Origin: Asterias rubens
Lineage: Eukaryota
DNA length: 64,000 bases
Direction of reading: 5' to 3'
NCBI RefSeq assembly: GCF_902459465.1
Contig: NC_047066.1
Location: 14,384,001 to 14,448,000, forward strand
The notes below the pieces were generated by a model. It had not been told where the DNA came from and ran no database searches. It saw only the letters and a program-made list of their open reading frames with translations. This document shows positions 8,497 to 42,635 of the stretch, one piece after another (the first letter of the stretch is position 1; each line of letters starts with the position of its first letter). Position numbers and translations under genes: made by a program.

Positions 8497-8712
8497 TGCT
8501 GGTGTAGTGGCCATTTATTCAAAATTTCCAGATCCATTCATTTATCAATGCGTAAATTATGCACTAAATGTGTAAGAATACTGTATCTTGTGCAACAGTC
8601 ACCTGAAGTCATTTTGATAGTGATAAATACAACATCAGATAATATGAGTAGATTTAATACTAACAATGAACTGACCCTTTTGTATTAACAGGGAAAGATC
8701 GTAAAATCAAAG

Positions 8713-11371: not shown

Positions 11372-11876
11372 ATAAGATATTATGTTGTTCCACTGTGACT
11401 TTTATGACAGATACAAATTTGTTGAGGAATCACGATTAGATACAAGATGAACTGTACAAATATACTCAATAACCCAAAATTACCTTGTTGCACCATGGTC
11501 GCATGGACACAACAATTTCATCAGTGAAGCAGATTATTATGTACTTTTATATTACACCTCTTGCTAGTTCTGTTTTCTGTTTGGCTGAAACACGGTCACA
11601 TGCATGAGATTTACGCCACCAGGAACTAGACCCACATTGAGACATCGTGTGTACGCTTTGCAGGAAATAGTTCCATGTGTGGGCAATAGACTTATAATTT
11701 TTGACTGGTTACAGCGCCCTCTCTTGACATGAACCATGGACTAGCAACTAAAAAGTTTCTTTCTTATTTCACATTTTTGACCCAAGGTGTTATAAAACAA
11801 ATTATGGACTGGCACATTATGGACTGGCACATTATGGACTGGCCTTATTCAGTAAATAGTGTACGTCTATTCCTGT

Positions 11877-11947
11877 GAGTGACCAGAGGAGGGACCTATT
11901 TCCCTCAGCCTTCAGCCTTAGGAAATAGGTCCCTCTCATGGTCACTC
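11877..11947. repeat. Hairpin with ~27-bp stem in type B spacers (also 17365, 31633, 37245; truncated at 43787)
   Basis: gagtgaccagaggagggacctatttcc-loop-ggaaataggtccctctcctggtcactc, preceded by a 15-bp tandem repeat (attatggactggcac) in 3 or 2 copies. Confidence 0.8.
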
Positions 11948-13984: not shown

Positions 13985-14200
13985 TGCTGGTGTAGTGGCC
14001 ATTTATTCAAAATTTCCAGAGCCATTCATTTATCAATGCGTAAATTATGCACTAAATGTGTAAGAATACTGTATCTTGTGCAACAGTCACCTGAAGTCAT
14101 TTTGATAGTGATAAATACAACATCAGATAATATGAGTAGATTTAATACTAACAATGAACTGACCCTTTTGTATTAACAGGGAAAGATCGTAAAATCAAAG

Positions 14201-16135: not shown

Positions 16136-19100
16136 TAAGACCTCACCTTGTAACATGCTAAAGTGAACGAACCAAAACAACTAAAACAATAATATCATAG
16201 CAAGCACATTACCCTAGTTCATGTACATTGTACCTTTGGTTTTGCTGGAAGTAACGGTTTGAATACCTTGTATTTGATTTATTAAAGAATCTGGACAATT
16301 AATTTCCTAATCCTGAATACAACCTTGAAGAGCATCCACAATCTCAGATGTCTGAAGCCAAAGGCAAAGGAGGCAATATGGCTCTATGTACATAAACGTT
16401 GTTTCAGAACAAAAATGGTGTAAATCTCCTAAATTACTGTTTACGTGAAATGCTTGTGAAGATATTTTTTTAAAAAATCAATGGAGGTTGAAGGAACACG
16501 TTGCCTTGGATCGGACGAGTTGGTCTATAAAAAGCGTTTGTAACTGTTTGTTATAAAATGCATTTGGTTGGAAAGATGTTTTAAAGGTAGAATACAATGA
16601 TCCACACAAATTTGCCTCGAAATTGCGTGGTTTTCCTTTTACTTTGCGAACTAACACGGTCGGCCATTTATGGGAGTAAATATTTGACTCCCATTGGCCG
16701 ACCGTGTTAGTCGTCGAGGTAAAAGGAAAACTGGCAATTTCGTGGCATGTTTGTGTGGATCATTGTATTCTACTTTTACAACATCTTATGCTTTTTATAA
16801 CAAATGGTTACAAACGCTTTTCAAAGACCAACTCGACCGCTCAAAGGCAACGTGTTCCTATAAGATATTATGTTGTTCCACTGTGACTTTTATGACAGAT
16901 ACAAATTTGTTGAGGAATCACGATTAGATACAAGATGAACTGTACAAATATACTCAATAACCCAAAATTACCTTGTTGCACCATGGTCGCATGGACACAA
17001 CAATTTCATCAGTGAAGCAGATTATTATGTACTTTTATATTACACCTCTTGCTAGTTCTGTTTTCTGGTTGGCTGAAACACGGTCACATGCATGAGATTT
17101 ACGCCACCAGGAACTAGACCCACATTGAGACATCGTGTGTACGCTTTGCAGGAAATAGTTCCATGTGTGGGCAATAGACTTATAATTTTTGACTGGTTAC
17201 AGCGCCCTCTCTTGACATGAACCATGGACTAGCAACTAAAAAGTTTCTTTCTTATTTCACATTTTTGACCCAAGGTGTTATAAAACAAATTATGGACTGG
17301 CACATTATGGACTGGCACATTATGGACTGGCCTTATTCAGTAAATAGTGTACGTCTATTCCTGTGAGTGACCAGAGGAGGGACCTATTTCCCTCAGCCTT
17401 CAGCCTTAGGAAATAGGTCCCTCTCCTGGTCACTCAAAGTCCCTTGGAGGAATAGACATGCAATATTTACCTCATTGCCAGTCAACAAGTGTTCAATAAC
17501 ATGTGAATGGCTTATAATGTACAATATAGTTCAACATGCACTAAAAGGCATGGTTGGTCAATAAGGTCACTTTCATATTAATAGTTATTTTTTATTTTTA
17601 ATGCCTGTAAATGGGAATCAGAATGTACTAAAACTACTGTTTACATAAACTGATGATTATTGTAAATTTTCTTTTACTACTATTATTATATTAAAACATT
17701 CTATTTTGCTTGTACAATAAATTGTGACTAAAACACAATTCATCTCTATAATCTGCTCTCACAGACCTGTTCACTTCGTTTTTGAAAAGGGCAAGGGCAC
17801 CAAGGCATTTCTCCTTGGTAAGGGCACCATTAGCCAGGAGAAATTTTAGGTCATGCACAGTGTGGGATGTACTTTGTGTATGAAAAGCCCGGCTCGTATA
17901 TTGTACTTTCTGCGAATGTGAAGCGAATTTTGACGTCGCAAGCTGTTTTCATGTTTTCATATTATTATGTTTCGCGTTGAGCAGGCGTTTCGGAGGCAAC
18001 TGACACAAAATTACTCGTTGTGAATTTGTGACGTCAAAATTTGTATCGCATTCACAGGAATGTACATATGTATGAACCGGGCTTTATACCACAGAATACT
18101 GTGAAACGGTTAGGGATAGTGCAAGCTGCTCACATCTGTGCAGAAATTGTGCAGGTGAAAATGTCATGCATCACGGTGATGTGTGATGAGCGTGTCCATC
18201 CGCACCCAAATTAACACACCAGAGGGAGGGCAAGGGGGGGGGGGGGGCACTTTGAGGCAATCTGACACGTCTTACGACCTTGTCGCACGAGGCAACTTTT
18301 ACAGGCAATTATAGATGGAGACCAAGGACAAAACAGACACGGGAAAGTAAAAGGTCTTCACAGGGGAATTCTAAAGACTGGGCCCGTGCTCTACACAAGA
18401 AATTTTTTATGTAAAATGTATGGGAAACTTGTGCAGGGACAAAGGATAGAACAAAAGCACGCTCTTGAAAACAAACATTTCAAGACGATTAAGCTTACAG
18501 AATTTTGGTGGGAATAGAATATGCTGAGTTCCCTTGATGGGAAAATTATCTATAGCAAACTAAACAACAAATAAACAAGTAAACAAGCCTACAAACACCA
18601 AACCCTTTTTATTTTACTATCACTACATCAGCAATATTCTAGACCACAAAACTGTCTAATTACATACAGACAAAAAGTGTTGGACATAAAGTGTACAATA
18701 AGTGCATAAATTCCTTGATTTTATATTCTTGATGGCACCATGCAGCATGAGATCATTTGTATGTCACAATAAATGTTTATTAATCGTAAAACAAAAAAAT
18801 ATCTGACAACAGAAAGATTTTGTTTTGTTTATAGTAATGTACCAACGCACAATGAGTTGTCAGTAGTCACTTATCCATTAAAACACTAATGGAAACCCAA
18901 CACAAACACACATTGTACTTTGTACACTCACTTGTAAAACAGTTGTCATGGTTATGGGTTACTATAAATACAGGCCTGGAATGTCATCTTTGAGAGGGCA
19001 AGGCCCTTTTCATTTTGTAAAAGTCACTTCCATTCCATTCCACAGGAACCTTTTATTTGAAAGGGGCACCAAGGCTAAGACTAGAGAGCAGTAGATGCTA

Positions 19101-21032: not shown

Positions 21033-23024
21033 ATGGCTGCCAGTACCACAGTCCATTCAGTGCTTGATAAGATCAGTAAGGATCATCTAGAATGTCCAAT
21101 ATGCACCAATCGCTTCATCAACCCAACAATGCTAGACTGTCTACACAGCTTCTGCTTCACATGCCTCAAGGAGCTTCACCAACAAGATCCTAACAACTCC
21201 ATCCTACTGTGTCCTCTGTGCAGAAAGAAAACAACACTAGAAGACAACAAGGTTGAAAGTCTACCTAAGGACTTTAAACTCAATGCCCTGGTGGATGAGT
21301 TTACTGTTCAGGAGCAACTCATGGAGGGTCATGGGTCAGAGGTCAAATGTCAAGCTTGTGAAAGAGATCATATGGCTGTTTCCAGATGTATTGACTGTGA
21401 CAATTTTATTTGTCAAGAATGTCAACAGGCACATCAGCATTTTGCTATTTTGAAATCACATCAAATCTATGCACTTGCTCAACTGCAATCAGGTGTAGTA
21501 ACCTATCGCAGTAAGATCAGGGAGTACATTCCAAAGTGTGGCAAGCACAGTGATCAGACTCTGAACATCTACTGCAACACATGCCAGAAGTTAGAATGCA
21601 CAACATGTACTGTTCTTGATCATGGAAATCCAAAGCATGACCTTATTGGCATACCTGAGGCTTTAGACAAATGCAAACAGGAAGTCGCAGAGCTGGTTGC
21701 AAAAGCTGAGAAGTGCAAGGTGGATATTCAAACTGCCATGGAACAAGCCAGTGAGTCTCGCAAGAAACTGGAATCTTCATATGCTGAAACCAATATGAAA
21801 ATCTCCCAGAAGGCTGCCAAGGAGAGAGCAAAGATCACAGAAGAGGAAAAGCAGCTGAAGCAAGAGGCAGAGAGTGTTTACAAAGACAGAGTCCAGACAT
21901 TTGAAACTGCAGAGGCAACCAATACAAAAGAAGTGACCCAGGTAGAGCACAAGCTGGGTGAAGTGAATCAGTTCATGACCCAAGCAAGCTCTCATGAGAT
22001 TATGGATTTCAAGCTGAAACTTATAAACAATCTCGATGAACTAACTAAGAAACAAGGTGAGATTGTGTCTGACAGGTTTTCCTTTCTTGAGTTTGAAGAA
22101 GGTGAAAGGTCAGTGGGAAGACTGGTGCTGGAAGATGAGCAACAAGCTAAAGCAGAGGCTCAGGCCAAGGAACATGAAACAATCCATACAAAACAAAAGT
22201 GGAAACTGAAAGAAAGTTTCAGTCAACTTGGCTTCACACAATTTGCTATGAAAAGGTTTGTTGCAGCTTTCTCCGACAGTGAAATAGTAGTATTACATGT
22301 AGATATAGACCACAATTCATTGTTTGCATTGAAACCTCAAGTAGCAGCAGACACATCCCAGTCTACTCACTGCCCACAAAGATTAAAACTAAAAGGTCTT
22401 TCTGAACCATCAGCACTCACTGTGGACAATAATGATCACCTGTATGTAATTGACAATCTAGAAGTCAAGGTCTTTAACAGGAAATATATGCTCATTCATC
22501 AGTTTCAACTAAGTGAGAGAAAGTTCTCCCCATCATGCCTTGCAGTGGATGAAAACAATCTCATAGCAGTGGGTTATTCACAAGGGCTAATCTCACTCTA
22601 CAACCCTGATGGATCACTCATCAGAACATTCTCTACTCCAGTAAAGGTATACTATTTGACTTTATACAATGAGAGGATTATCAACAGTAGTACAGATGAT
22701 CGACATTTACACTTAGTTGATTATCAGGGTGGAAAGGTGTTCTCAGTAGATATTGATCAGTCTGAAGAATCCTTTGGTTTGTGCTGTGATAAAGATGGAT
22801 GTATCTTTGTTGCTCAATATAATGAGACAACACATAACAATAGAATAAGTCAGTACAGTCCCGATGGCAAGTACATTGGATGTGTCATTGAGGATTGTGG
22901 TGATGCCTATGACATCACATTCACACCATCTGGCAATCTTGTAGTGGCAGCAAAAACATCAGTAAACATCTTCCAAGTTGTTTCCCGGTACAGTAAGACC
23001 TCACATTGTAACATGCTAAAGTGA
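21033..23024 (+). CDS. TRIM-NHL-like protein, copy 4 (663 aa)
   Basis: RING/B-box/coiled-coil part essentially identical to copy 1; first propeller blades are distinct (FSQLGFTQFAMKRF). Confidence 0.93.
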   Translation: MAASTTVHSVLDKISKDHLECPICTNRFINPTMLDCLHSFCFTCLKELHQQDPNNSILLCPLCRKKTTLEDNKVESLPKDFKLNALVDEFTVQEQLMEGHGSEVKCQACERDHMAVSRCIDCDNFICQECQQAHQHFAILKSHQIYALAQLQSGVVTYRSKIREYIPKCGKHSDQTLNIYCNTCQKLECTTCTVLDHGNPKHDLIGIPEALDKCKQEVAELVAKAEKCKVDIQTAMEQASESRKKLESSYAETNMKISQKAAKERAKITEEEKQLKQEAESVYKDRVQTFETAEATNTKEVTQVEHKLGEVNQFMTQASSHEIMDFKLKLINNLDELTKKQGEIVSDRFSFLEFEEGERSVGRLVLEDEQQAKAEAQAKEHETIHTKQKWKLKESFSQLGFTQFAMKRFVAAFSDSEIVVLHVDIDHNSLFALKPQVAADTSQSTHCPQRLKLKGLSEPSALTVDNNDHLYVIDNLEVKVFNRKYMLIHQFQLSERKFSPSCLAVDENNLIAVGYSQGLISLYNPDGSLIRTFSTPVKVYYLTLYNERIINSSTDDRHLHLVDYQGGKVFSVDIDQSEESFGLCCDKDGCIFVAQYNETTHNNRISQYSPDGKYIGCVIEDCGDAYDITFTPSGNLVVAAKTSVNIFQVVSRYSKTSHCNMLK

Positions 23025-26000: not shown

Positions 26001-27481
26001 GTTTATAGTAATGTAACAACGCACAATGAGTTGTCAGTGGTCACTGATCCATTTAAACACTAAAGGAAACCCAACACAAACACACATTGTACTTTGTACA
26101 CTCACTTGTAAAACAGTTGTCATGGTTATGGGCTACTATAAATACAGGCCTGGAATGTCATCTTTGAGAGGGCAAGGCAGTTTTCATTTTGCAAAAGGCA
26201 TTCCATTGAAAAGTTTACGGGTGAACCTACATGTATTGAAGAGGCACCAAGGCCAACAACAGAGGCAATACATATATGTATATAGATGCTACATTATGTA
26301 TGGCCTCTGCAGCCTCCCTGGTGTATTTCAGGTCTGTGTATGTGTACACAATAGGTGTAATTGTACTGTATACAAGTCTGTATACATGTAGAAAGTGACA
26401 CTTGAAGGTGACATCATGGATAGTTTGCATTAGATTGTTGGCCAGGCATACCTGCATGCATGCATGGAAAGTAGAGTTTAACTATACATGAAGTTACATA
26501 ATACTCACAGAACCCCTTTCACACTAAAATGAAAATCCCACAATATATTCCCTACACTGTAAATACATGTAGCAGATTTATTTGACTTCAAGGGAACATG
26601 TACCCTACATGTACTTCTTAAACTACAGTTTTCACATGGTATAAATATATTTTAAAGGTTTTATTGACGCAAGGCGGTGTAATGTATGTAAGAGCCTAAT
26701 TGTGACACCCTGTTCCCAGAATGGTCAGTCCAATTCTCACCCCCCCCCCCCCCCCCCCCCGCACACACAATGAATTAATTAGGGAATAACAGTGCGAGGA
26801 CCCGGTCTTCACTGCTTGGTAATGAACGACCTGGTGGCTGGGCCGCTGTTAACGGACCATTGATAAATACTTCTTTAAAGAAATAAACGGCTACAATTTT
26901 CAAAATTTTGTGACTCTTCTCGTGTAGAAACTTCCAGACATGTTGAGGGGGCATATTTTAGCTTTTGATGGCTCCCGCCTCTTTCATGTGCTAATCACAT
27001 TACTGAGAATTTGAGACAGGTGACTTTGTATAAGAATGGTTTGTTAAACGCCCTCAGTGGGGTCAAAGGAGGCAGACGATTGGACGATAGCTGTTCTTTG
27101 CGCGTTAAAAACATGCGCAGCAGTGTAGCGTCCCTGTCGTAGCAAGTTGCGTAAATGCAAGGGGTAATACATTTCAGATACGTACGCACATGTGCCAATA
27201 AAATAAGATGAATAACCTAACCCTGTGATTTGCCAAAAGCACAGACACTAGTTGTACACAATGTATGCTGGTGTAGTGGCCATTTATTCAAAATTTCCAG
27301 AGCCATTCATTTATCAATGCGTAAATTATGCACTAAATGTGTAAGAATACTGTATCTTGTGCAACAGTCACCTGAAGTCATTTTGATAGTGATAAATACA
27401 ACATCAGATAATATGAGTAGATTTAATACTAACAATGAACTGACCCTTTTGTATTAACAGGGAAAGATCGTAAAATCAAAG

Positions 27482-29440
27482 ATGGCTGCCAGTATCACAG
27501 TCACTTCAGTGCTTGATAAGATCAGTAAGGATCATCTAGAATGTCCAATATGCACCAATCGCTTCATCAATCCAACAATGCTAGACTGTCTACACGGCTT
27601 CTGCTTCACATGCCTCAAGGAGCTTCACCAACAAGATCCTAACAACTCCATCCTACTGTGTCCTCTGTGCAGAAAGAAAACAACACTAGAAGACAACAAG
27701 GTTGAAAGTCTACCTAAGGACTTTAAACTCAATGCCCTGGTGGATGAGTTTACTGTTCAGGAGCAACTCATGGAGGGTCATGGGTCAGAGGTCAAATGTC
27801 AAGCCTGTGAAAGAGATCATATGGCTGTTTCCAGATGTATTGACTGTGACAATTTTATTTGTCAAGAATGTCAACAGGCACATCAGCATTTTGCTATTTT
27901 GAAATCACATCAAATCTATGCACTTGCTCAACTGCAATCAGGTGTAGTAACCTATCGCAGTAAGATCAGGGAGTACATTCCAAAGTGTGGCAAGCACAGT
28001 GATCAGACTCTGAACATCTACTGCAACACATGCCAGAAGTTAGAATGCACAACATGTACTGTTCTTGATCATGGAAATCCAAAGCATGACCTTATTGGCA
28101 TACCTGAGGCTTTAGACCAATGCAAACAGGAAGTCGCAGAGCTGGTTGCAAAAGCTGAGAAGTGCAAGGTGGATATTCAAACTGCCATGGAACAAGCCAG
28201 TGAGTCTCGCAAGAAACTGGAATCTTCATATGCTGAAACCAATATGAAAATCTCCCAGAAGGCTGCCAAGGAGAGAGCAAAGATCACAGAAGAGGAAAAG
28301 CAGCTGAAGCAAGAGGCAGAGAGTGTTTACAAAGACAGAGTCCAGACATTTGAAACTGCAGAGGCAACCAATACAAAAGAAGTGACCCAGGTAGAGCACA
28401 AGCTGGGTGAAGTGAATCAGTTCATGACCCAAGCAAGCTCTCATGAGATTATGGATTTCAAGCTGAAACTTACAAACAATCTCGATGAACTAACTAAGAA
28501 ACAAGGTGAGATTGTGTCTGACAGGTTTTCCTTTCTTGAGTTTGAAGAAGGTGAAAGGTCAGTGGGAAGACTGGTGCTGGAAGATGAGCAACAAGCTAAA
28601 GCAGAGGCTCAGGCCAAGGAACATGAAACAATCCATACAAAACAGGAGTGGAAACTGAAGGAAAGTGTTAGTAAAATTGGGAACACAATATTTAAGTGGG
28701 CGAAATCGGTTGCAGCTTTCTCCGACAATGAAATAGTAGTACTAGATACAACACACAATGCATTGTTTTCATTAAAACCTCAATTAGCAGCAGACAAATC
28801 ACAATCTACTCACTGCCTACAAAGATTAAAAGTCACAGGACTTACTAAACCAACAGCACTCACTGTGGACAATAATGATCACCTGTATGTGGTTGACAAT
28901 AGAGAAGTCAAGGTTTTTAACAGGAAATATATGCTCCATCATCAGTTCCAGCTAAGTGGGAGAAAGCTCTCCCCATCATGCCTTGCAGTGGATGAAAACA
29001 ATCTCATAGCAGTGGGTTATTCACAAGGGCTAATCTCACTCTACAACCCTGATGGATCACTCATCAGAACATTCTCTACTCCAGTAAAGGTAGACTATTT
29101 GACTTTATACAATGAGAGGATTATCTTCAACAGTAGTACAGATGATCCAGATTTACACTTAGTTGATTATCAGGGTGGAAAGGTGTTCTCAGTAGATATT
29201 GATCAGTCTGAAGGATCCTTTGGTTTGTGCTGTGGTAAAGATGGAAGTATCTTTGTTGCTCAATATAATGGGACAACACAAAACAATAGAATATGTCAGT
29301 ACAGTCCTGATGGCAAGTACATTGGATGTGTCATTGAGGATTGTGGTAATGCCTATGACATCACATTCACACCATCTGGCAACCTTGTAGTAGCAGCATA
29401 CACATCAGTAAAAATCTACCAAGTTGTTTCCCCAGTATAG
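27482..29440 (+). CDS. TRIM-NHL-like protein, copy 5 (652 aa)
   Basis: Intact ORF. Copy-1-like propeller start and copy-2/3-like C-terminus. Confidence 0.9.
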   Translation: MAASITVTSVLDKISKDHLECPICTNRFINPTMLDCLHGFCFTCLKELHQQDPNNSILLCPLCRKKTTLEDNKVESLPKDFKLNALVDEFTVQEQLMEGHGSEVKCQACERDHMAVSRCIDCDNFICQECQQAHQHFAILKSHQIYALAQLQSGVVTYRSKIREYIPKCGKHSDQTLNIYCNTCQKLECTTCTVLDHGNPKHDLIGIPEALDQCKQEVAELVAKAEKCKVDIQTAMEQASESRKKLESSYAETNMKISQKAAKERAKITEEEKQLKQEAESVYKDRVQTFETAEATNTKEVTQVEHKLGEVNQFMTQASSHEIMDFKLKLTNNLDELTKKQGEIVSDRFSFLEFEEGERSVGRLVLEDEQQAKAEAQAKEHETIHTKQEWKLKESVSKIGNTIFKWAKSVAAFSDNEIVVLDTTHNALFSLKPQLAADKSQSTHCLQRLKVTGLTKPTALTVDNNDHLYVVDNREVKVFNRKYMLHHQFQLSGRKLSPSCLAVDENNLIAVGYSQGLISLYNPDGSLIRTFSTPVKVDYLTLYNERIIFNSSTDDPDLHLVDYQGGKVFSVDIDQSEGSFGLCCGKDGSIFVAQYNGTTQNNRICQYSPDGKYIGCVIEDCGNAYDITFTPSGNLVVAAYTSVKIYQVVSPV

Positions 29441-29490
29441 TAAGACTTCACCTTGTAACATGCTAAAGTGAACGAACCAAAACAACTAAA

Positions 29491-30457
29491 AGCCCTTTTC
29501 ACACGACAAAGTCAAACTAGGGTCCTTGGTCCCCGGTGCCAGTTGTCTTGACCAAGGACGTTAGTCAAACTCAAACAGGACCTTTCACACGGCGCAGAAA
29601 CCAACGTCCCGTGTCTCGGAACATTCGTCTTTTGTGGTGCTAAAGGTCAACATTGTTCATCGCCATTTCACTGATATCCGCATCGCCAACGTATGTACCA
29701 ATCATTTTTCTGCACTGTCGTGAATCGGCGGCCCCTAACAAAGATTTTTGTTTTGGACGAAGAATGAACGTGTAGTTGAGTTGCTCGAACCATTCACTCA
29801 TGCTCCGACCACCAATTCCAAACAGAAAATGTAACAATCGATTATAAACTGGGGAGTGCAGATTCTTACCGATGAATGTTGTCATAAATCTGGCACGCAT
29901 TTTGTTGCACACTGAAGTTTTTTTATATAAATATGTCGTTCTATGCTCGATCATGAAACTTATCGAACGAATGCTACGTAGGCCTACTCCTAGAACTATG
30001 CTGGAATTTCAGGGAAAATCAAATTGATTTTCGAGAGTGAACTTTTTGAAACATGTCTCAACGATCTCATGCTAAACATTGAAAACTTGCTCTCTTGAAG
30101 GAGTCATGCACACGTTCTCATAAACATGCTCAAAGGTTTAACGTTATCGTACAACAGGGTCGAACATCTTGATTTTCTTGCACTATGTGTTTCTTCTTGC
30201 GCGCATGCGTAGTAGCTCCAGCCACACCAGGGTCCTTCGTTACGCAAGCAATGTTCATTCACACAGCACACACGGGCGATCGTGGTATAATTTTCACAAC
30301 GTTGTGTTTTCAAGACGGAGGTCTGGACCTTGGTCTTAAAAAGACCACGGACCCGTGCCTATTTAAGCAGAGGTACCTTTCACACGATGTGGATTAAACA
30401 ACGTTGTGTTCTTAAGACCAAGGACCCCCTGCTTATTTTCCTCGTGTGAAAAGGCCT
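29491..30457. mobile_element. 967-bp non-autonomous DNA transposon (PIF/Harbinger-like) 51 bp after the stop of copy 5
   Basis: TIR agcccttttcacacga / tcgtgtgaaaaggcct; TAA(A) duplication. The empty site caactaaaacaataat is present in copies 2, 3, 6 and 7. Confidence 0.85.
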
Positions 30458-33400
30458 TAAAACAATAATATCATAGCAAGCACATTACCCTAGTTCATGT
30501 ACATTGTACCTTTGGTTTTGCTGGAAGTAACGGTTTGAATACCTTGTGTTTGATTTATTAAAGAATCTGGACAATTAATTTCCTAATCCTGAATACAACC
30601 TTGAAGAGCATCCACAATCTCAGATGTCTGAAGCCAAAGGCAAAGAAGGCAATATGGCTCTATGTACATAAACGTTGTTTCAGAACAAAAATGGTGTAAA
30701 TCTCCTAAATTACTGTTTACGTGAAATGCTTGCGAAGATATTTTTTAAACATCAACGGAGGTTGAAGGAACACGTTGCCTTGGATTGGACGAGTTGGTCT
30801 ATAAAAAGCATTTGTAACTGTTTGTTATAAAATGCATTTGGTTGGAAAGATGTTTTACAGGTAGAATACATACAAATTTGCCTCGAAATTGCGTGGTTTT
30901 CCTTTTACTTTGCGAACTAACACGGTCGGCCATTTATGGGAGTCAATATTTGACTCCCATTGGCCGACCGTGTTAGTCATCGAGGTAAAAGGAAAACTGG
31001 CAATTTCGTGGCATGTTTGTGTGGATCATTGTATTCTACTTTTACAACATCTTATGCTTTTTATAACAAACGGTTACAAACGCTTTTCAAAGACCAACTC
31101 GACCGCTCAAAGGCAGCGTGTTCCTATAAGATATTATGTTGTTCCACTGTGACTTTTATGCCAGATACAAATTTGTTGAGGAATCACGATTAGATACAAG
31201 ACGAACTGTACAAACATACTCAATAACCAAAAATAACCTTGTTGCACCATGGTCGCATGGACACAACAATTTCATCAGTGAAGCAGATTATGATGTACTT
31301 TTATATTACACCTCTTGCTTGTTCTGTTTTCTGGTTGGCTGAAACACGGTCACATGCATGAGATTTACGCCACCAGGAACTAGACCTGCATTGAGACACT
31401 GTGTGTGTACGCTTTGCAGGAAATAGTTCCATGTGTGGGCAATACACTTATAATTTTTGACTGGTTACAGCGCCCTCTCTTGGCATGAATGATAGACTAG
31501 CAACTAAAAAGTTTCTTTCTTATTTCACATTTTTGACCCAAGGTGTTATAAAACAAATTATGGACTGGCACATTATGGACTGGCACATTATGGACTGGCC
31601 TTATTCAGTAAATAGTGTACGTCTATTCCTGTGAGTGACCAGAGGAGGGACCTATTTCCCTCAGCCTTCAGCCTTAGGAAATAGGTCCCTCTCCTGGTCA
31701 CTCAAAGTCCCTTGGAGGAATAGACATGCAATATTTACCTCATTGCCAGTCAACAAGTGTTCAATAACATGTGAATGGCTTATAATGTACAATATAGTTC
31801 AACATGCACTAAAAGGCATGGTTGGTCAATAAGGTCACTTTCATATTAATAGTTATTTTTTATTTTTAATGCCTGTAAATGGGAATCAGAATGTACTAAA
31901 ACTACTGTTTACATAAACTGATGATTATTGTAAATTTTCTTTTACTACTATTATTATATTAAAACATTCTATTTTGCTTGTACAATAAATTGTGACTAAA
32001 ACACAATTCATCTCTATAATCTGCTCTAACAGACCTGTTCACTTCGTTTTTGAAAAGGGCAAGGGCACCAAGGCATTTCTCCTTGGTAAGGGCACCATCA
32101 GCCAGGAGAAATTTTAGGTCATGCACAGTGTGGGATGTACTTTGTGTATGAAAAGCCCGGCTTGTATATTGTACTTCCTGCGAATGTGAAGCGAATTTTG
32201 ACGTCGCAAGCTGTTTTCATGTTTTCATATTATTATGTTTCGCGTTGAGCAGGCGTTGTGGAGGCAACTGACACAAAATTACTCGTTGTGAATTTGTGAC
32301 GTCAAAATTTGTATCGCATTCACAGGAATGTACATGTATGAACCGGGCTTTATACACAGAATACTGTGAAACGGTTAGGGATAGTGCAAGCTGCGCACAG
32401 GTGTGCAGAAATTGTGCAGGTGAAAATGTCAAGCATCACGGTGATGTGTGATGAGCGTGTCCATCCGCGACCCAATTAACACACCAGAGGGTGGGCAAGG
32501 GGGAGGGGGGGCACTTTGAGGCAATCTGACACGTCTTACGACCTTGTCGCACAAGGCAACTTTTACAGGCATCTATAGATGGAGACCAAGGACAAAACAG
32601 ACACAAGAAAGTAAAAGGTCTTTACAGGGGAATTCTAAAGACTGGGCCCGTGCTCTACACAAGGACATTTTTGTGTAAAATGTATGGGAAACTTGTGCAG
32701 GGACAAAGGAAAGAAAAAAAGCACGCTCTTGAAAACATACATTTCAAGACGATTAAGCTTTCAGAGTTTTGGTGGGAATAGAATATGCTGAGTTCCCTTG
32801 ATGGGAAAATTATCTATAGCATACTAAACAACAAATAAACAAGTAAACAAGCCTAAAAACAACAAACCCTTTTTATTTTACTATCACTACATCAGCAATA
32901 TTCTAGACCACAAAACTGTCTAATTACTTACAGACAAAAAGTGTTGGACATAAAGTGAACAATAAGTGCATAAATTCCTTGATTTTATATTCTTGATGGC
33001 ACCATGCAGCATGAGATCATTTGTATGTCACAATAAATGTTTATGGATCGTCAAAAAAAAAATATCTGACAACAGAAAGATTTTGTTTGGTTTAGAGTAA
33101 TGTAACAACGCACAATGAGTTGTCAGTGGTCACTGATCCATTAAAACACTAATGGAAACCCAACACAAACACACATTGTACTTTGTACACTCTCTTGTAA
33201 AACAGTTGTCATGGTTATGGTTTACTATAAATACAGGCCTGGAATGTCATCTTTGAGAGGGCAAGGCCCTTTTCATTTTGTAAAAGTCACTTCCATTCCA
33301 TTCCACAGGAACCTTTTATTTGAAAGGGGCACCAAGGCTAAGACTAGAGAGCAGTAGATGCTATGGCCTCCACAGCCCTTCCAGGTCTGTGTACACGATA

Positions 33401-34049
33401 GGCGTAATTGTATTGTACATGTATACTACACTTGACGGTGACATCATTGGATCTATAAATAGAAAGGGGAATTTTCTTTCAGGGAGTGATGAGCAATAAT
33501 GCCAACTACAGTGTACATGGTACTATGGACTAGTGCATCACACAGACCCAGCACTAACAGTATACAGTAAGCCAAGACAGAAGTCACAGCTTTTGGGTGA
33601 AAACTGATGAAGAAAGACCTCCAACAACACCAAGAAATTGTTTGAAACCATACACAATCGTAAGTACTTGTTAGTCCATGAACTGTAGGGACAATTATTT
33701 AGACTGAGGTCAAATAGTTTGCATGTGATTGTTGGCAAAGGTTCTTTTTCTTGTTTTAACCCAGGGATGCTAAAGCACTCAATATTCAAACTATAATAAC
33801 TGCCTGGCAAGCCGTTTCACAATTAAATGTGTAACTATTGAGAAGATCATAGAGTAAGGACAGAGGTGAGAAGATGAACAATGCAAAATTACGTACAAAA
33901 TGTGTAAGAACATGGTTCCAGCAACTTGTCTTTTGCACAAGTACAATCACCTGAAATCATAACACATTAAAAGATACAATATGAGTAGATTACTAACAGT
34001 ATAGTTAATTGATATTTTTGCACCAACAGGGAAAGATCGTAACAAGCTC

Positions 34050-36059
34050 ATGTCAAAAATGGCTGCCAGTATCACAGTCACTTCAGTGCTTGATAAGATC
34101 AGTAAGGATCATCTAGAATGTCCAATATGCACCAATCGCTTCATCAATCCAACAATGCTAAACTGTCTACACAGCTTCTGCTTCACATGCCTCAAGGAGC
34201 TTCACCAACAAGATCCTAACAACTCCATCCTACTGTGTCCTCTGTGCAGAAAGAAAACAACACTAGAAGACAACAAGGTTGATAGTCTACCTAAGGACTT
34301 TAAACTCAATGCCCTGGTGGATGAGTTTACTGTTCAGGAGCAACTCATGGAGGGTCATGGGTCAGAGGTCAAATGTCAAGCCTGTGAACATGGTGAACGA
34401 GATCATACCGCTGTTTCTAGATGTATTGACTGTGAACATTTTCTTTGTCAAGATTGTCAACAAGCACATCAGCAATTGGCTATTTTGAAATCACATAAAA
34501 TCTACACATTTGCTCAACTGCAATCAGGTGTAGTAACCTACCGCAGTAAAATCAGGGAGTACATTCCAAAGTGTGGCAAGCACAGTGATCAGACTCTGAA
34601 CATCTACTGCAACACATGCCAGAAGTTAGAATGCACAACATGTAGGCCTACTGTTCTTGATCATGGAAATCCAAAACATGACCTTATTGGCATACCTGAG
34701 GCTTTAGACAAATGCAAACAGGAAGTCGCAGAGCTGGTTGCAAAAGCTGAGAAGTGCAAGGTGGATATTCAAACTGCCATGGAACAAGCCAGTGAGTCTC
34801 GCAAGAAACTGGAATCTTCATATGCTGAAACCAATAAGAAAATCTCCAAGAAGGCTGCCAAGGAGAGAGCAAAGATCACCAAAGAGGAAAAGCAGCTGAT
34901 GCAAGAGGCAGAGAGTGTTTACAAAGACAGAGTCCAGACATTTGAAACTGCAGAGGCAACCAACACAAAAGAAGTGACCCAGGTAGAGCACAAGCTGGAT
35001 GAAGTTAATCAGTTCATGACCCAAGCAAGCTCTCATGAGATTCTGGATTTCAAGCTGAAACTTATAAACAATCTTGATGAACTTACTAAGAAACAAGGTG
35101 AGATTGTGTCTGACAGGCTTTCCTTTCTTGAGTTTGAAGAAGGTGAAAGGTCAGTGGGAAGACTGGTGCTGGAAGATGATCAACAAGCTAAAGCAGAGGC
35201 TCAGGCCAAGGAACATGAAACAATCCATACAAAACAAGAGTGGAATCTGAAGGAAAGTTACAGTCAATTTGGCTTCACAAAGTTGAAAAATGCAAGGTCT
35301 GTTACAGCTTTCTCAGATAATGAATTAGTAGTATTAGATACAACACACAAAGCACTGTTTGCATTAAAACCCCAAGTAGCAGCAAACAAATCACAATCTA
35401 CTCACTGCTCACAAAGATTAAATGTCAAAGGTCTTACTAAACCAACAGCACTCACTGTGGACAATAATGATCACCTGTATGTGATTGATGATCTAGAAGT
35501 CAAGGTTTTTAACAGGAAATATATGCCCCTCTATCAGTTCCAAGTAAGTGTAAGAAACTTCTCCCCATCATGCCTTGCAGTGGATGAAAACAATCTCATA
35601 GCAGTGGGTTATTCACAATGGCGGCAGATCTCACTCTACAACCCTTATGGATCACGAATCAGAACATTCTGTACTCCAGCAAATGTAGACTATTTGACTT
35701 CATACAAGGAGAGGATTATCTACAGCAGTCGAATTGATAAACAGTTACACTCAGTTGATTATAAGGGTGGAAAGGTGTTCTCAGTAGATACTGATCAGTC
35801 TGAAATATCCTTTGGTGTGTGCTGTGATAAAGATGGTAGTATCTTTGTTGCTCAATTCCATAGAGGAGCCAGGAGAATATGTCAGTACAGTCCTGATGGC
35901 AAGTACATTGGATGTGTCATTGAGGCTTGTGGTTATGCCTATGACATCACATTCACACCATCTGGCAATATTGTAGTAGCAGCAGACCAATCAGTAAACA
36001 TCTTCAAAGTTGTTTCCCGGTACAACAGTAAGACCTCACCTTGTAACATGCTAAAGTGA
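34050..36059 (+). CDS. TRIM-NHL-like protein, copy 6 (669 aa; start could be 34059)
   Basis: Most divergent copy. In-frame insertions in both B-boxes; propeller loops GYSQWRQ and QFHRGARR. Confidence 0.93.
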   Translation: MSKMAASITVTSVLDKISKDHLECPICTNRFINPTMLNCLHSFCFTCLKELHQQDPNNSILLCPLCRKKTTLEDNKVDSLPKDFKLNALVDEFTVQEQLMEGHGSEVKCQACEHGERDHTAVSRCIDCEHFLCQDCQQAHQQLAILKSHKIYTFAQLQSGVVTYRSKIREYIPKCGKHSDQTLNIYCNTCQKLECTTCRPTVLDHGNPKHDLIGIPEALDKCKQEVAELVAKAEKCKVDIQTAMEQASESRKKLESSYAETNKKISKKAAKERAKITKEEKQLMQEAESVYKDRVQTFETAEATNTKEVTQVEHKLDEVNQFMTQASSHEILDFKLKLINNLDELTKKQGEIVSDRLSFLEFEEGERSVGRLVLEDDQQAKAEAQAKEHETIHTKQEWNLKESYSQFGFTKLKNARSVTAFSDNELVVLDTTHKALFALKPQVAANKSQSTHCSQRLNVKGLTKPTALTVDNNDHLYVIDDLEVKVFNRKYMPLYQFQVSVRNFSPSCLAVDENNLIAVGYSQWRQISLYNPYGSRIRTFCTPANVDYLTSYKERIIYSSRIDKQLHSVDYKGGKVFSVDTDQSEISFGVCCDKDGSIFVAQFHRGARRICQYSPDGKYIGCVIEACGYAYDITFTPSGNIVVAADQSVNIFKVVSRYNSKTSPCNMLK

Positions 36060-39000
36060 ACAAACCAAAACAACTAAAACAATAGTATCATAGCATGCAC
36101 ATTACCCTAGTTCATGTACATTGTAGCTTTGGTTTTACTGGAAGTGAACACTGTAGATGTACCTTGTTTTTGATTTAGCAGAGAATCTGGACAAACAATT
36201 TCCTAATCCTGAATACAACCTTGAAGAGCATCCACAATCTGAAATGTCTGAAGCCAAAGGCAAAGGAGGCAATATGGCATGATGTACATTACGTTGTTTC
36301 AGAACAAAAAGGTTGTAAATCTCCTAAATTACTGTTTACGTGAAACGCTTGTGAAAATGTTTTTAAAAAATCAATGGAGGTTAAAGGAACACGTTGCCTT
36401 GGATCGGACGAGTTGGTCTATAAAAAGCGTTTGTAACTGTTTGTTATAAAATGCATTTGGTTGGAAAGATGTTTTAAAGGTAGAATACATACAAATTTGC
36501 CTCGAAATTGCGTGGTTTTCCTTTTACTTTGCGAACTAACACGGTCGGCCATTTATGGGAGTCAATATTTGACTTCCATTAGCCGACCGTGTTAGTCGAC
36601 GAGGTAAAAGGAAAACTGGCAATTTCGTGGCATGTTTGTGTGGATCATTGTATTCTACTTTTACAATATCTCATGCTTTTTATAACAAATGGTTACAAAT
36701 GCTTTTCAAAGACCAACTCGACCGCTCAAAGGCAACGTGTTCCTATAAGATGTTATGTTGTTCCACTGTGACTTTTATGCCAGATACAAATTTGTTGAGG
36801 AATCACGATTAGATACAAGACGAACTGTACAAATATACTCAATAACCAAAAATTACCTTGTTGCACCATGGTCGCATGGACACAACAATTTCATCAGTGA
36901 AGCAGATTATGATGTACTTTTATATTACACCGCTTGCTAGTTCTGTTTTCTGGTTGGCTGAAACACGGTCACATGCATGAGATTTACGCCACCAGGAACT
37001 AGACCCACATTGAGACATTGTGTGTACGCTTTGCAGGAAATAGTTCCATGTGTGGGCAATAGACTTATAATTTTTGACTGGTTACAGCGCCCTCTCTTGA
37101 CATGAATGATGGACTAGCAACTAAAAAGTTTCTTTCTTATTTCACATTTTTGACCCAAGGTGTTGTAAAACAAATTATGGACTGGCACATTATGGACCGG
37201 CCTAGTTCAGTAAATAGTGTACGTCTATTCCCCCTCGGGCCTGTGAGTGACCAGAGGAGGGACCTTTTTCCCTCAGCCTTCAGCCTTAGGAAATAGGTCC
37301 CTCTCCTGGTCACTCAAAGTCCCTTGGAGGAATAGACATGCAATATTTACCTCATTGCCAGTCAACAAGTGTTCAATAACATGTGAATGGCTTATAATGT
37401 ACAATATAGTTCAACATGCACTAAAAGGCATGGTTGTTCAATAAGGTCACTTTCATATTAATAGTTATTTTTTATTTTTAATGCCTGTAAATGGGAATCA
37501 GAATGTACTAAAACTACTGTTTAAATAAACTGATGATTATTGTAAATTTTCTTTTACTACTATTATTATATTAAAACATTCTATTTTGCTTGTACAATAA
37601 ATTGTGACTAAAACACAATTCATCTCTATCATCTGCTCTCACAGACCTGTTCACTTCGTTTTTGAAAAGGGCAAGGGCACCAAGGCATTTCTCCTTGGTA
37701 AGGGCACCATTAGCCAGGAGAAATTTTAGGTCATGCACAGTGTGGGATGTTCTTTGTGTATGAAAAGCCCGGCTCGTATATTCTGCGAATGTGAAGCGAA
37801 TTTTGACGTCGCAAGCTGTTTTCATGTTTTCATATTATTATGTTTCGCGTTGAGCAGGCGTTGTGGAGGCAAGTAACACAAAATTACTCGTTGTGAATTT
37901 GTGACGTCAAAATTTGTATCGCATTCACAGGAATGTACATGTATGAACCGGGCTTTATACACAGAATACTGTGAAACGGATAGGGATAGTGCAAGCTGCG
38001 CACAGGTGTGCAGAAATTGTGCAGGTGAAAATGTCACGCATCACAGTGATGTGTGATGACCGTGTCCATCCGCGACCCAATTAACACACCAGAGGGTGGG
38101 CAAGGGGGGGGGGGGGGGGCACTTTGAGGCAATCTGACACGTCTTACGACCTTGTCGCACGAGGCAACTATAGATGGAGACCAAGGACAAAACAGACACG
38201 GGAAAGTAAAAGGTCTTCACAGGGGAATTCTAAAGACTGGGCCCATGCTCTACACAAGGAAATTTTTGTGTAAAAATGTATGGGAAACTTGTGCAGGGAC
38301 AAAGGAAAGAACAAAAGCACGCTCTTGAAAACATACACTTCCAGACGATTAAGCTTTCAGAGTTTTGGTGGGAATAGAATATGCTGAGTTCCCTTGATGG
38401 GAAAATTATCTATAGCAAACTAAACAACAAATAAACAAGTAAACAAGCCTACAAACAACAAACCCTTTTTATTTTACTATCACTACATCAGCAATATTCT
38501 AGACCACAAAACTGTCTAATTACTTACAGACAAAAAGTGTTGGGCATAAAGTGTACAATAAGTGCATAAATTCCTTGATTCTATATTCTTGATGGCACCA
38601 TGCAGCATGAGATCATTTGTATGTCACAATAAATGTTTATTTATCGTAAAAAAAAAAATATCTGACAACAGAAAGATTTTGTTTTGTTTATAGTAATGTA
38701 ACAACGCACAATGAGTTGTCAGTAGTCACTGATCCATTAAAACACTAATGGAAACCCAACACAAACACACATTGTACTTTGTACACTCACTTGTAAAACA
38801 GTTGTCATGGTTATGGGTTACTATAAATACAGGCCTGGAATGTCATCTTTGAGAGGGCAAGGCCCTTTTCATTTTGTAAAAGTCACTTCCATTCCATTCC
38901 ATAGGAACCTTTTATTTGAAAGGGGCACCAAGGCTAAGACTAGAGAGCAGTAGATGCTATGGCCTCCACAGCCCTTCCAGGTCTGTGTACACGATAGGCG

Positions 39001-39475
39001 TAATTGTATTGTATACTGTACAGGTATACTACACTTGACAGTGACATCATTGGATCTATAAATAGAAAGGGGAATTTTCTTTCAGGGAGTGATGAGCAAT
39101 AATGCCAACTACAGTGTACATGGTACTATGGACTAGAGCATCACACAGACCCAGCACTAACAGTGTACAGTAAGCCAAGACAGAAGTCACAGCTTTGGGG
39201 TGAAAACTGATGAAGAAAGACCTCCAACAACACCAAGAAATTGCTTGAAACCTTACACAATCGTAAGTACTTGTTAGTCCATGAACTGTAGGGACAATTA
39301 TTTAGACTGAGGTAAAATAGTTTGCATGTGAATGTTGGCAAAGGTATACAATGTCACTGCCTTTGTTATCTTTTGTTATAACTTTTGTTATCTTCAGAAC
39401 CCCTTACGAGCTCCTTCCACACTAAATGAATATCCCAGAAAATTCCCTAGAAGATTTACTTGGCCTTTTCACACA

Positions 39476-39735
39476 CTTGAAATTCCTTGGGAAGGGAAAT
39501 TACTTTGAATTTTCATAACTCAAGCACGGATGACGTCATCATGACGTAACTTCAACGGTTTCTTCTCCTAATGAATTAACTATGTGCGAAGTTTCAAGTT
39601 CATACAACCTTGGGAAAGATGTTTTTGTGAGGGGACAAAGAAGATTCAGAAGAAGAAGAAGAAGAAGAAGTATTAAGAAGTAAAAAACTGAACAAAAATA
39701 AGAGGTGTTCCGGGCTGTTGGCCCGAACACCTAAT
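39476..39735 (+). mobile_element. Probable non-autonomous Helentron/DINE-1-like element in intron of copy 7
   Basis: Internal (gaa)n microsatellite followed by a GC-rich 3' hairpin aggtgttccgggc-tgttg-gcccgaacacct-aat. Absent from the homologous intron of copy 4. Confidence 0.5.
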
Positions 39736-40640
39736 AATAAAAACAAGGCTATAATTTTGACACAACATGGTGTGCTGTAGTACAGTAGCCCCATAACAAG
39801 TCATTCACAGAATGGTTAGTCTGACTACCCCCCCCCCCCCCTAAGTGCAGCAGCAAAACAATTGAGTCGTAGAGAATGTATTTGTTAAAAGATGTTTTTA
39901 TGATTGTAACTCAACAAAAAGGCAATACATACATTATAAATTTATTAAGTGTGTCGGGAAGTTTTTGTTGTGTGCAAAGGAAATTGCAGTTATTGCTGGC
40001 AAACAACTGTAGAAATGTTCACCTCTCAATGGCCATACATGTATTTAACAAGTTTAAGCGTTACATTAGCCCAAAATGTCGGACTCTTGTTTTTAAAAGT
40101 ACACTGTATGCTTGTGGGTGGGGTTAAGCCAACCCCCGGATTTGCATCTTGAGTGTATTTCCCGAGAAAATAGCATCAATTAGGAAAAACAAACATGGGG
40201 AGGTGGTGGGGTTATAAAAAAATTAAGGAATTTCCTTCTGTTTTTTTTTCTGGGAGTTGTTTTTGTAGTTGAAAGGGGCTCATTTAATTAATTAGTCAAA
40301 AGTTCTTGCCTTTTTGTTTTTCTTTCTTTTCTTTTTTCTTGTTTTGACCCTGGGATGCTTAAAGCACTCAATATTCAAACTATAATAACTGCCTGGCAAG
40401 CTGTTTCACAATTAAATGTGTAACTATTGAGAAGATCATAGAGTAAGGACAGAGGTGAGAAGATGAACAATGCAAAATTACGTACAAAATGTGTAAGAAC
40501 ATGGTTCCAGCACCTTGTATTTTGCGCAAGTACAATCACCTGAAATCATAACACATTGAAAGATACAATATGAGTAGATCGAACTAACAGTATAGTTAAT
40601 TGATATTTTTGCACCAACAGGGAAAGATCGTAACAAGCTC

Positions 40641-42635
40641 ATGTCAAAGATGGCTGCCAGTATCACAGTCACTTCAGTGCTTGATAAGATCAGTAAGGAT
40701 CATCTAGAATGTCCAATATGCACCAATCGCTTCATCAATCCAACAATGCTAGACTGTCTACACAGCTTCTGCTTCACATGCCTCAAGGAGCTTCACCAAC
40801 AAGATCCTAAAAACTCCATCCTACTGTGTCCTCTGTGCAGAAAGAAAACAACACTAGAAGACAACAAGGTTGACAGTCTACCTCAGGACTTTAAACTCAA
40901 TGCCCTGGTGGATGAGTTTACTGTTCAGGAGCAACTCATGGAGGGTCATGGGTCAGAGGTCAAATGTCAAGCCTGTGAAAGAGATCATACGGCTGTTTCC
41001 AGATGTATTGACTGTGACAATTTTATTTGCCAAGAATGTCAACAAGCACATCAGCATTTTGCTACCTTGAAATCACATAAGATCTACTCACTTGCTCAAC
41101 TGCAATCAGGTGTAGTAACTTACCGCAGTAAAATCAGGGAATACATTCCAAAGTGTGGCAAGCACAGTGATCAGACTCTCAACATCTACTGCAACACATG
41201 CCAGAAGTTAGAATGCACAACATGTACTGTTCTTGATCATGGAAATCCAAAACATGACCTTATTGGTATACCTGAGGCTTTAGACAAATGCAAACAGGAA
41301 GTCGCAGAGCTGGTTGCAATCGCTGAGAGTTGCAAGGCTGATATTCAAACTGCCATGGAACAAGCCAGTGAGTCTCGCAAGAAACTGGAATCTTCATATG
41401 CTGAAACCAATATGAAAATCTCCCAGAAGGCTGCCAAGGAGAGAGCAAAGATCACCGAAGAGGAAAAGCAGCTGAAGCAAGAGGCAGAGAGTGTTTACAA
41501 AGACAGAGTCCAGACATTTGAAACTGCAGAGGCAACCAACACAAAAGAAGTGACCCAGGTAGAGCACAAGCTGGATGAAGTGAATCAGTTCATGACCCAA
41601 GCAAGCTCTCACGAGATTATGGATTTCAAACTGAAACTTATAAACAATCTTGATGAACTAACTAAGAAACAAGGTGAGATTGTGTCTGACAGGCTTTCCT
41701 TTCTTGAGTTTGAAGAAGGTGAAAGGTCAGTGGGAAGACTGGTGCTGGAAGATGATCAACAAGCTAAAGCAGAGGCTCAGGCCAAGGAACATGAAACAAT
41801 CCATACAAAACAGGAGTGGAAACTGAAGGAAAGTGTTAGTAAAATTGGGAACACAATATTTAAGTGGGCGAAATCGGTTGCAGCTTTCTCCGACAATGAA
41901 ATAGTAGTACTAGATACAACACACAATGCATTGTTTTCATTAAAACCTCAATTAGCAGCAGACAAATCACAATCTACTCACTGCCTACAAAGATTAAAAG
42001 TCACAGGACTTACTAAACCAACAGCACTCACTGTGGACAATAATGATCACCTGTATGTGATTGACAAAAGAGAAGTCAAGGTTTTTAACAGGAAATATAT
42101 GCCCCTCTATCAGTTCCAACTAAGTGTAAGAGACTTCTCCCCATCATGCCTTGCAGTGGATGAAAACAATCTCATAGCAGTGGGTTATAAAGAAGGGCAG
42201 AAGATCTCACTCTACAACCCTGATGGATCACTCAGCAGAACATTCTCTACTAAAGTAAATGTACACTATTTGACTTCATACAAGGAGAGGATTATCTACA
42301 GCAGTAGAGGTGATACACATTTACACTCAGTTGATTATAAGGGTGGAAAGGTGTTCTCAGGAGATACTGATCAGTCTGAATCATCCTATGGTGTGTGCTG
42401 TGATAAAGATGGAAGTATCTTTGTTGCTCAATATAATAGGACAACACAAAACAATAGAATATGTCAGTACAGTCCTGATGGCATTGGATGTGTCATTGAG
42501 GATTGTGGTAACGCCTATGACATCACATTCACACCATCAGGCAATCTTGTAGTGGCAGCAAAAACATCAGTAAACATCTTCCAAGTTGTTTCCCGGTACA
42601 ACAGTAAGACCTCACCTTGGAACATGCTAAAGTGA
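40641..42635 (+). CDS. TRIM-NHL-like protein, copy 7 (664 aa; start could be 40650)
   Basis: Intact ORF with a mosaic propeller and a 2-aa deletion (SPDG--IGCV). Confidence 0.93.
   Translation: MSKMAASITVTSVLDKISKDHLECPICTNRFINPTMLDCLHSFCFTCLKELHQQDPKNSILLCPLCRKKTTLEDNKVDSLPQDFKLNALVDEFTVQEQLMEGHGSEVKCQACERDHTAVSRCIDCDNFICQECQQAHQHFATLKSHKIYSLAQLQSGVVTYRSKIREYIPKCGKHSDQTLNIYCNTCQKLECTTCTVLDHGNPKHDLIGIPEALDKCKQEVAELVAIAESCKADIQTAMEQASESRKKLESSYAETNMKISQKAAKERAKITEEEKQLKQEAESVYKDRVQTFETAEATNTKEVTQVEHKLDEVNQFMTQASSHEIMDFKLKLINNLDELTKKQGEIVSDRLSFLEFEEGERSVGRLVLEDDQQAKAEAQAKEHETIHTKQEWKLKESVSKIGNTIFKWAKSVAAFSDNEIVVLDTTHNALFSLKPQLAADKSQSTHCLQRLKVTGLTKPTALTVDNNDHLYVIDKREVKVFNRKYMPLYQFQLSVRDFSPSCLAVDENNLIAVGYKEGQKISLYNPDGSLSRTFSTKVNVHYLTSYKERIIYSSRGDTHLHSVDYKGGKVFSGDTDQSESSYGVCCDKDGSIFVAQYNRTTQNNRICQYSPDGIGCVIEDCGNAYDITFTPSGNLVVAAKTSVNIFQVVSRYNSKTSPWNMLK

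Follow-up and report, generated by a model that had tools for sequence, protein, structure and literature searches.

Seven TRIM-NHL genes (c1 to c7) stand head to tail on the forward strand of the stretch of Asterias rubens DNA analyzed here, the 64,000-nt window C5:14384001-14448000 (contig NC_047066.1), and the beta-propellers that they encode are mosaics of segments shared among the paralogues. Phylogenetic incongruence along the gene is statistically supported and reaches into the non-coding flanks. We hold with good confidence that these genes form a young, still-rearranging array of TRIM-NHL E3 ligase genes that is reshaped by non-allelic homologous recombination, the variable face of the propeller being its putative recognition surface. 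The coding sequence of each gene is a single exon, and all seven open reading frames (ORFs), 644-669 amino acids long and spaced ~5.5-7.6 kb apart, are intact.

An earlier, sequence-only reading of this DNA had proposed that propeller segments were shuffled between the copies and had suggested recombination detection as a check; the tests that we ran along those lines were significant and bear the mosaic structure out. On the coding alignment of the seven copies, the pairwise homoplasy index test gave z = -9.4, with 0 of 2000 permutations as extreme. Permutation of the longest identical tract (a GENECONV-like test) singled out c5 and c7, which share a run of 55 consecutive identical polymorphic sites (p <= 2e-4), as well as c1 and c7 (p <= 2e-4) and the 3' ends of c2/c3 and c5 (p 0.006-0.01), and a 3SEQ-like triplet test recognized c5 as a product of c1 and c2 (p <= 5e-4), with several further triplets likewise supported. 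Maximum-likelihood trees of five segments disagree, and approximately unbiased (AU) tests found that no one tree fits all five: each segment rejected two or more of the four trees from the other segments, by margins of 18-41 log-likelihood units, and the majority of cross-segment comparisons were rejected.

The informative sites, read along the nucleotide alignment, change their partition of the copies (given here by number) several times. Columns 1-1131 separate 67 from 12345, and 23 from the rest; columns 1188-1389, 46 from 12357; columns 1484-1584, 67 from the rest; columns 1665-1751, 145 from 2367; columns 1798-1860, 14 from the rest; and columns 1935-1993, 235 from 1467. When the first 47 kb of the window were painted against themselves in 250-nt pieces, non-coding flanks and indels changed type together with the coding blocks, which excludes convergent substitution as the source of the switches.

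The clearest case is c5. Its protein is c1-like to about residue 585 and then carries the c2/c3 tail (YNGTT, GNAY, and AYTSVKIYQVVSPV followed by the stop), as the sequence-only reading had described. At the nucleotide level, c5 matches c1 at 99-100% identity from ~1 kb upstream as far as coding nucleotide ~1500, and matches c2/c3 at 99-100% identity from coding nucleotide ~1770 onward; past a private 969-bp insertion, its 3' flank goes on matching c2/c3 for ~3 kb further (the type-B spacer). The interval within which the switch falls (Table 1) holds two c5-private changes, at 29214 and 29235. One switch with parental flanks on both sides is the signature of unequal crossing-over, and the 5.5-kb units that carry c2 and c3 bear, at 99.76% identity, the signature of a very recent tandem duplication; the coding sequences of c2 and c3 differ by 1 nt. 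The single switch point, the kilobases of parent-specific flank, and the c2/c3 duplicate together uphold the earlier proposal of unequal crossing-over, with the proviso that the two units, judged by their sequence, could stem from a very recent duplication by unequal crossover or else reflect a haplotype that was assembled twice. A c2-like block within c5 (alignment columns 1641-1653) was considered as a second conversion and rejected, being a cluster of c1-private changes. As a separate observation, positions 2711-2723 of the window (the NVEYC codons of c1, in the D-A(3-4) loop) hold four c1-private substitutions in 13 nt, which may be adaptive changes in a cluster or the trace of a micro-conversion whose donor was not sampled.

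In c7 and c4 the exchanged pieces are shorter, 253-309 nt and ~330 nt, respectively, and each is flanked on both sides by another type, in agreement with the short conversion tracts that had been postulated. c7 is c6-like in its upstream region, tail, and downstream region, and c1/c5-like in blade 1. The protein alignment recovered the motifs listed in the sequence-only reading, namely, a c1/c5-type start (VSKIGNTIFKWAKS), the c6-type KYMPLYQFQ.SVR.FS and SYKERIIYSSR, the c2-type DTHLHSV, the c5-type TTQNNRICQY, and a tail of c6 type. The c5-identical tract within this c6-like gene, across which c6 and c7 differ at 39 sites, points to a short conversion tract. Further short patches of c7 are common to a second array, which is inverted (opposite strand) and lies at C5 14.54-14.70 Mb, 130-300 kb away (L007, L009-L015, L018, L019, and L022).

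That second array also bears on c4. As had been noted, c1 and c4 have a common distal propeller and 3.4-kb 3' flank (97.7% identical) and a first-blade segment that is only 83% identical. Over the 695 nt that end at 22195, just before the patch listed in Table 1, c4 does not differ from c1; within the patch the two are 83% identical, with ~60 differing positions that include a 6-nt indel, and beyond 22524 c4 is back to the c1/c5 type. In 120-nt windows the patch is 94-100% identical to inverted-array members L011, L009/L018, and L013/L019, and tract tests against that array gave p values of ~7e-4 to 1e-3. Because the matching array is inverted, conversion accounts better than crossover for the c4 exchange. 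A first-blade type common to c4 and c6, as the 46 versus 12357 pattern might suggest, was rejected: the two are 84% identical there and have only ancestral states in common, c4 matching the inverted array and c6 matching the Asterias amurensis gene Aa2.

These comparisons suggest that exchange extends beyond the seven copies to the inverted array of the same chromosome. Searched in six frames, the genome gave 70 family matches, among them a broken copy 0 just upstream of the window, the inverted array, and a third group at 12.2 Mb (L016, L017, L021, and L025), and one chromosome carries no fewer than 17 close paralogues of full length; the further arrays are 82-86% identical to c1, and some of their members are split or truncated. 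By sequence, c6 is the unshuffled orthologue of Aa2 (L034:10001-11986), to which it is 95-99% identical in every segment and with which it falls in one 90% protein cluster. The synonymous divergence (dS) between c6 and Aa2 is ~0.05. Since dS in the RING/B-box/coiled-coil (RBCC) half of c1-c5 is lower (0.004-0.035), the amplification or homogenization of c1-c5 is younger than the split between A. rubens and A. amurensis.

Structure prediction indicates where the variation lies. An AlphaFold2 model of c1 residues 380-662, for which a 54-sequence alignment was used, shows a six-bladed propeller of 24 strands (predicted local distance difference test score, 88; predicted template modeling score, 0.87). 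Its best Protein Data Bank matches by Foldseek are all NHL domains, those of TRIM2, TRIM3, Brat, Thin, Mei-P26, TRIM71, and NHL-2 (E values, 1e-15 to 1e-12; template modeling scores, 0.72-0.78; 12-20% identity). After strands had been assigned to blades in this model, the residues that vary among c1-c7 were counted: 18 of 21 in the B-C loops and 28 of 42 in the D-A loops, versus 4 of 28 in the A-B loops and 8 of 29 in the C-D loops, with 46 of 148 variable in the strands. The difference between the two loop sets (46/63 versus 12/57) is significant (Fisher p = 1e-8). From the topology of propellers, these B-C and D-A loops are predicted to lie on one face, which is conventionally called the top and is the RNA-binding face in Brat and LIN-41.

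The ratio of nonsynonymous to synonymous divergence (dN/dS; pairwise Nei-Gojobori estimates) follows the same division. It is 0.1-0.8 in the RBCC half, except for the near-identical pair c1-c5 (1.3, from 6 changes); 0.4-1.6 elsewhere in the propeller, for pairs with enough synonymous changes to give a ratio; and 1.05 to above 15 in the set of B-C and D-A loops. Over the whole propeller, the youngest pairs stand out: c1 and c2 are separated by 3.5 synonymous versus 44.5 nonsynonymous changes, and c2 and c5 by 0.5 versus 33.5. Loop variants are common, in reticulate fashion, to arrays and species: the D-A(2-3) loop of c7 is that of A. amurensis Aa2, and the B-C(5) loop of c7 is that of rL010 while that of c5 is found in rL007 and rL009. 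Single hypervariable loop positions have up to eight states; together with the reticulate variants, they indicate that both point change and exchange contribute.

In our reading, unequal crossing-over yielded both the c2/c3 duplicate and the c5 hybrid, interlocus conversion tracts of ~250-330 nt pasted a c1/c5-type first blade into c7, and c4 has a first blade typical of the inverted array. The RBCC half stays near-identical among c1-c5, amino acid change concentrates in the loops of one predicted face, and recombination would re-assort loop variants among paralogues, building a germline repertoire of E3 ligases with differing specificities. The sequence-only reading had spoken of combinatorial binding surfaces. 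The surface part of that claim agrees with the variable residues on one predicted face and with loop dN/dS above 1, and binding itself is a prediction; on the model, the variable face may be inferred to be a ligand-recognition surface under diversifying selection. By analogy with the B30.2 loops of TRIM5 and of the fish finTRIMs, a role in defense against viruses or mobile elements would be most likely. In a broader scenario, to which we give only a modest chance, the TRIM-NHL scaffold, normally a conserved one, may have become in sea stars the basis of a large repertoire of germline-encoded E3 ligases for recognition in the cytosol. Top-face loop cassettes would be re-assorted by conversion within and between two inverted arrays, intact copies that lack a promoter, such as c5, would serve as donors, and the family would be an invertebrate counterpart of the restriction factors TRIM5 and finTRIM, directed against viruses or mobile elements.

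Several observations weigh against the interpretation as a working, recombining recognition family. The boundaries of the segments used in the AU tests were picked after the data had been inspected, and the AU p values are therefore optimistic; the likelihood gaps are nevertheless large. With Bonferroni correction for 72 tests, the tracts that c4 has in common with the inverted array become borderline, and single-pair tests of dN > dS are marginal (p 0.015-0.05), the pairs not being independent. Upstream of c5, the deletion listed in Table 1 took the TATA-like box (TCTATAAATAG), the leader exon, and its GTAAGT donor, all of which are retained in c1, c2, c4, c6, and c7, and an insertion resembling a miniature inverted-repeat transposable element (MITE) begins 50 nt past the c5 stop. 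Having lost its promoter-proximal region and gained a MITE-like element near its stop, at least the c5 hybrid may be non-functional; although its ORF is intact, it is possibly silent and may be a crossover by-product, at most a sequence donor rather than a working new receptor.

This state of c5 would also fit an account in which recombination is real and selectively irrelevant, the mosaics being neutral by-products of an unstable array in which the propeller is relaxed. A broken copy upstream of the window (copy 0, described below), several broken members of the second array, and a whole-propeller dN/dS of ~0.8-1 in older pairs, as relaxed constraint predicts, fit such an account as well. However, all seven ORFs are intact, and the variation is not evenly distributed, as relaxation would predict, but confined to the B-C and D-A loops, with the A-B and C-D loops and the strands conserved; moreover, the propellers of the youngest pairs have dN/dS values of 2-20, and the RBCC half of the same genes is under purifying selection. 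We therefore consider the neutral account unlikely.

A further concern is that the switch points are chimeric consensus of near-identical paralogues, produced by assembly or polishing, and that c2/c3 is a falsely duplicated haplotype. The copies are indeed 93-99.9% identical, and the c2 and c3 units differ by 0.24%, within the allelic range. The read evidence, consisting of short-read Logan contigs of 60-490 nt, is divided on this point. Among the contigs listed, none bridges the c5 junction (29213-29246), and the five words sampled from an 82-nt query across the junction, each of whose 31-mers takes in a c5-private base, are not listed for run X1; these too count against our reading. In contrast, this weak word search gave a share of 0.40 in six runs of organism D from three studies, and c5-unique pieces, each occurring once in the window, lie on the two sides of the junction in separate read sets (X1, 29102-29200; X8, 29236-29305). 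There is no N in the window, and the same kind of mosaic links the genes to the independent A. amurensis assembly. The patches in c4 and c7 differ by 14-17% plus indels from the alternative type, which is beyond mis-polishing, and c5 has features of its own to either side (upstream, a 296-bp deletion; downstream, the 969-bp MITE-like insertion) in addition to kilobases of parent-specific flank. These private features, flanks, divergent patches, and A. amurensis links make an assembly chimera quite improbable. The last alternative, that parallel substitutions in similarly selected hypervariable loops mimic a mosaic with no exchange at all, would account for some homoplasy at positively selected positions with up to eight states but can scarcely be credited when the shared blocks take in synonymous sites, indels, and non-coding flanks, when c7 equals c5 at 55 consecutive polymorphic sites, and when the spacer type of c5 switches along with its coding block.

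The evolutionary pattern that we propose for the sea-star array is already known from B30.2 TRIMs, and by this comparison the novelty would lie in the NHL domain and the echinoderm host lineage. The B30.2 TRIMs of fish and primates form a clustered RBCC family whose hypervariable recognition domain is under positive selection and contains recombination breakpoints detected by GARD (PMC3137616). Like the fish finTRIM/ftr, btr, and hltr genes and primate TRIM5/TRIM22, the sea-star genes are clustered, lineage-specific RBCC E3 ligase genes with variable C-terminal loops; the variable domain of the former, however, is the B30.2/PRY-SPRY beta-sandwich of vertebrate group 2, whereas that of the sea-star genes is the NHL beta-propeller. 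Sardiello et al. placed non-SPRY TRIMs in a conserved group 1 and found the dynamic group 2 to be absent from invertebrates (PMC2533329), and TRIM-NHL proteins are textbook conserved developmental regulators, fast evolution having been thought a speciality of vertebrate B30.2 TRIMs (PMC2533329).

With TRIM2, TRIM3, TRIM32, TRIM71/LIN-41, Brat, Mei-P26, Thin, and NHL-2, the sea-star proteins share a RING domain, a B-box, a coiled coil (putative here), and a six-bladed NHL propeller. They differ from these canonical TRIM-NHL proteins in that their propellers are only 12-20% identical, no filamin domain was detected in c5, c6, and c7, and many paralogues with a fast-evolving propeller face stand in place of single-copy conserved developmental regulators. 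A second parallel comes from the sea urchin Sp185/333 (SpTransformer) family, a set of clustered small genes that are mosaics of shared elements, attributed to recombination and gene conversion, and are linked to immunity. Both are tight echinoderm clusters of mosaic genes, yet the proteins are unrelated, those of Sp185/333 being secreted and intrinsically disordered and those of the sea star being predicted cytosolic E3 ligases with a folded propeller. A literature search found nothing on a sea-star TRIM-NHL family or on hypervariable NHL propellers. The NHL propeller described here resembles an immune receptor in its hypervariable face, its pairwise dN/dS estimates above 1 on that face, its tandem lineage-specific expansion, and its exchange between paralogues and arrays. 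It may thus represent an unrecognized candidate defense family in echinoderms, with a bearing on sea-star disease biology, and would offer a natural experiment in the blade-by-blade re-assortment of beta-propeller specificity.

The features discussed above are collected in Table 1.

Table 1. Features of the TRIM-NHL array, in window coordinates
Feature	Position	Strand	Evidence or remark
c1, TRIM-NHL gene, 662 aa	1079..3067	+	ORF and alignment with the other copies
Type-A spacer 3' of c1	3068..6448	+	97.7% identical to 23025-26421, 3' of c4
Two tandem 5.5-kb units (c2 unit, c3 unit)	6540..17521	+	99.76% identical over 5,495 nt; 10 mismatches, 3 gaps
3' end of the c2 non-coding leader exon	6661..6690	+	GTAAGT donor next
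c2, 644 aa	8713..10647	+	ORF and alignment
c3, 644 aa	14201..16135	+	ORF and alignment
c4, 663 aa; c1-like RBCC half, distal propeller, and 3' flank	21033..23024	+	Alignment, flank comparison
c4 patch, ~330 nt: linker end, blade 1, part of blade 2	22196..22524	+	
Site of ~296-bp deletion, upstream of c5	26410..26430	+	Compare 6449-6744, upstream of c2
c5, 652 aa; hybrid, 5' of c1 type and 3' of c2/c3 type	27482..29440	+	Alignment, triplet test, painting
c5 crossover interval	29213..29246	+	Last c1/c4-type site 29213, first c2/c3-type site 29246
MITE-like insertion, 969 bp, private to the c5 3' flank	29490..30458		17-nt terminal inverted repeats AAGCCCTTTTCACACGA / TCGTGTGAAAAGGCCTT
c6, 669 aa; A. 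amurensis Aa2 orthologue over its whole length	34050..36059	+	Segment identities
c7, 664 aa; mosaic	40641..42635	+	Alignment, painting
c7 conversion tract	41757..42059	+	Same as c5 over 309 nt; the minimum tract is 253 nt (41813-42059)

The domain layout of the proteins is a RING, two B-boxes, a helical linker, and the six-bladed NHL propeller. Pfam was run on c5, c6, and c7, the RING region of c1-c4 being near-identical by alignment. The RING (PF00097, zf-C3HC4) was found above the cut-off at residues 21-63 of c5 and 24-66 of c6 and c7 (E, 3e-8 to 6e-8), followed by an ANCHR-like B-box (PF22586, residues 106-145) and a zf-B_box (PF00643, residues 167-205). K, E, Q, and A abound in residues ~210-390, which on inspection of the alignment by eye appear helical, a putative coiled-coil region, and the NHL repeats matched PF01436 (E, 1e-8 to 1e-6). 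A filamin domain (PF00630) was not found in c5, c6, and c7 at E <= 0.01, which makes the architecture RBCC-NHL without filamin; PF00630 is present in distant sponge and metagenomic relatives. Among known proteins, TRIM2, TRIM3, TRIM71, and TRIM45 have a filamin/IG-FLMN domain after the coiled coil (ahead of the NHL domain where there is one), and TRIM32 has none.

The surroundings of the array add some detail. On the reverse strand of the window, an exon at 57753-58247 encodes the first part of a Malectin domain (PF11721; E, 4e-22). The orthologous TRIM-NHL array of A. amurensis is annotated within a Malectin-domain gene, on the opposite strand, and the array is therefore probably nested in an intron of that gene; the A. 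amurensis counterpart of the 14.5-14.7 Mb array is inside a sugar-transporter gene. Copy 0, at G000:C5:14378832-14380317 (L028/L030), lies ~3.7-5.2 kb before the window. Its residues 1-220 are 99% identical to c1, its middle is missing, and its propeller part is 79% identical, combining a c6/c7-type MPLYQF motif with a c1-type tail. The MITE-like element next to c5 is a dispersed repeat, to judge from the contigs of several runs, which leave its ends into other sequence.

Upstream of the coding exon lies a non-coding leader exon (lost in c5) that ends in TACAATC and is followed by a GTAAGT donor, and the acceptor (TACTAAC..CAG) sits 21 nt upstream of the ATG. One contig, from run X2, has the leader exon joined to the acceptor. 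Donor, acceptor, and spliced contig establish that the introns mentioned in the sequence-only reading are real introns of the 5' untranslated region (5'UTR); an exact protein look-up found no independent transcript-derived copies. The 30-mer at the leader end of c2 recurs identically at 12148-12177 (c3), at 19404-19433 (c4), and at L001:353-382 (c1). As for the spacers, c1 and c4 have type A and the remaining copies type B. Finally, the 5'UTR introns of c4 and c7 include stretches of ~1.0-1.5 kb (19500-20990 and 39250-40250, respectively) that have no match in the first 47 kb of the window and are, from their sequence, probably private insertions.

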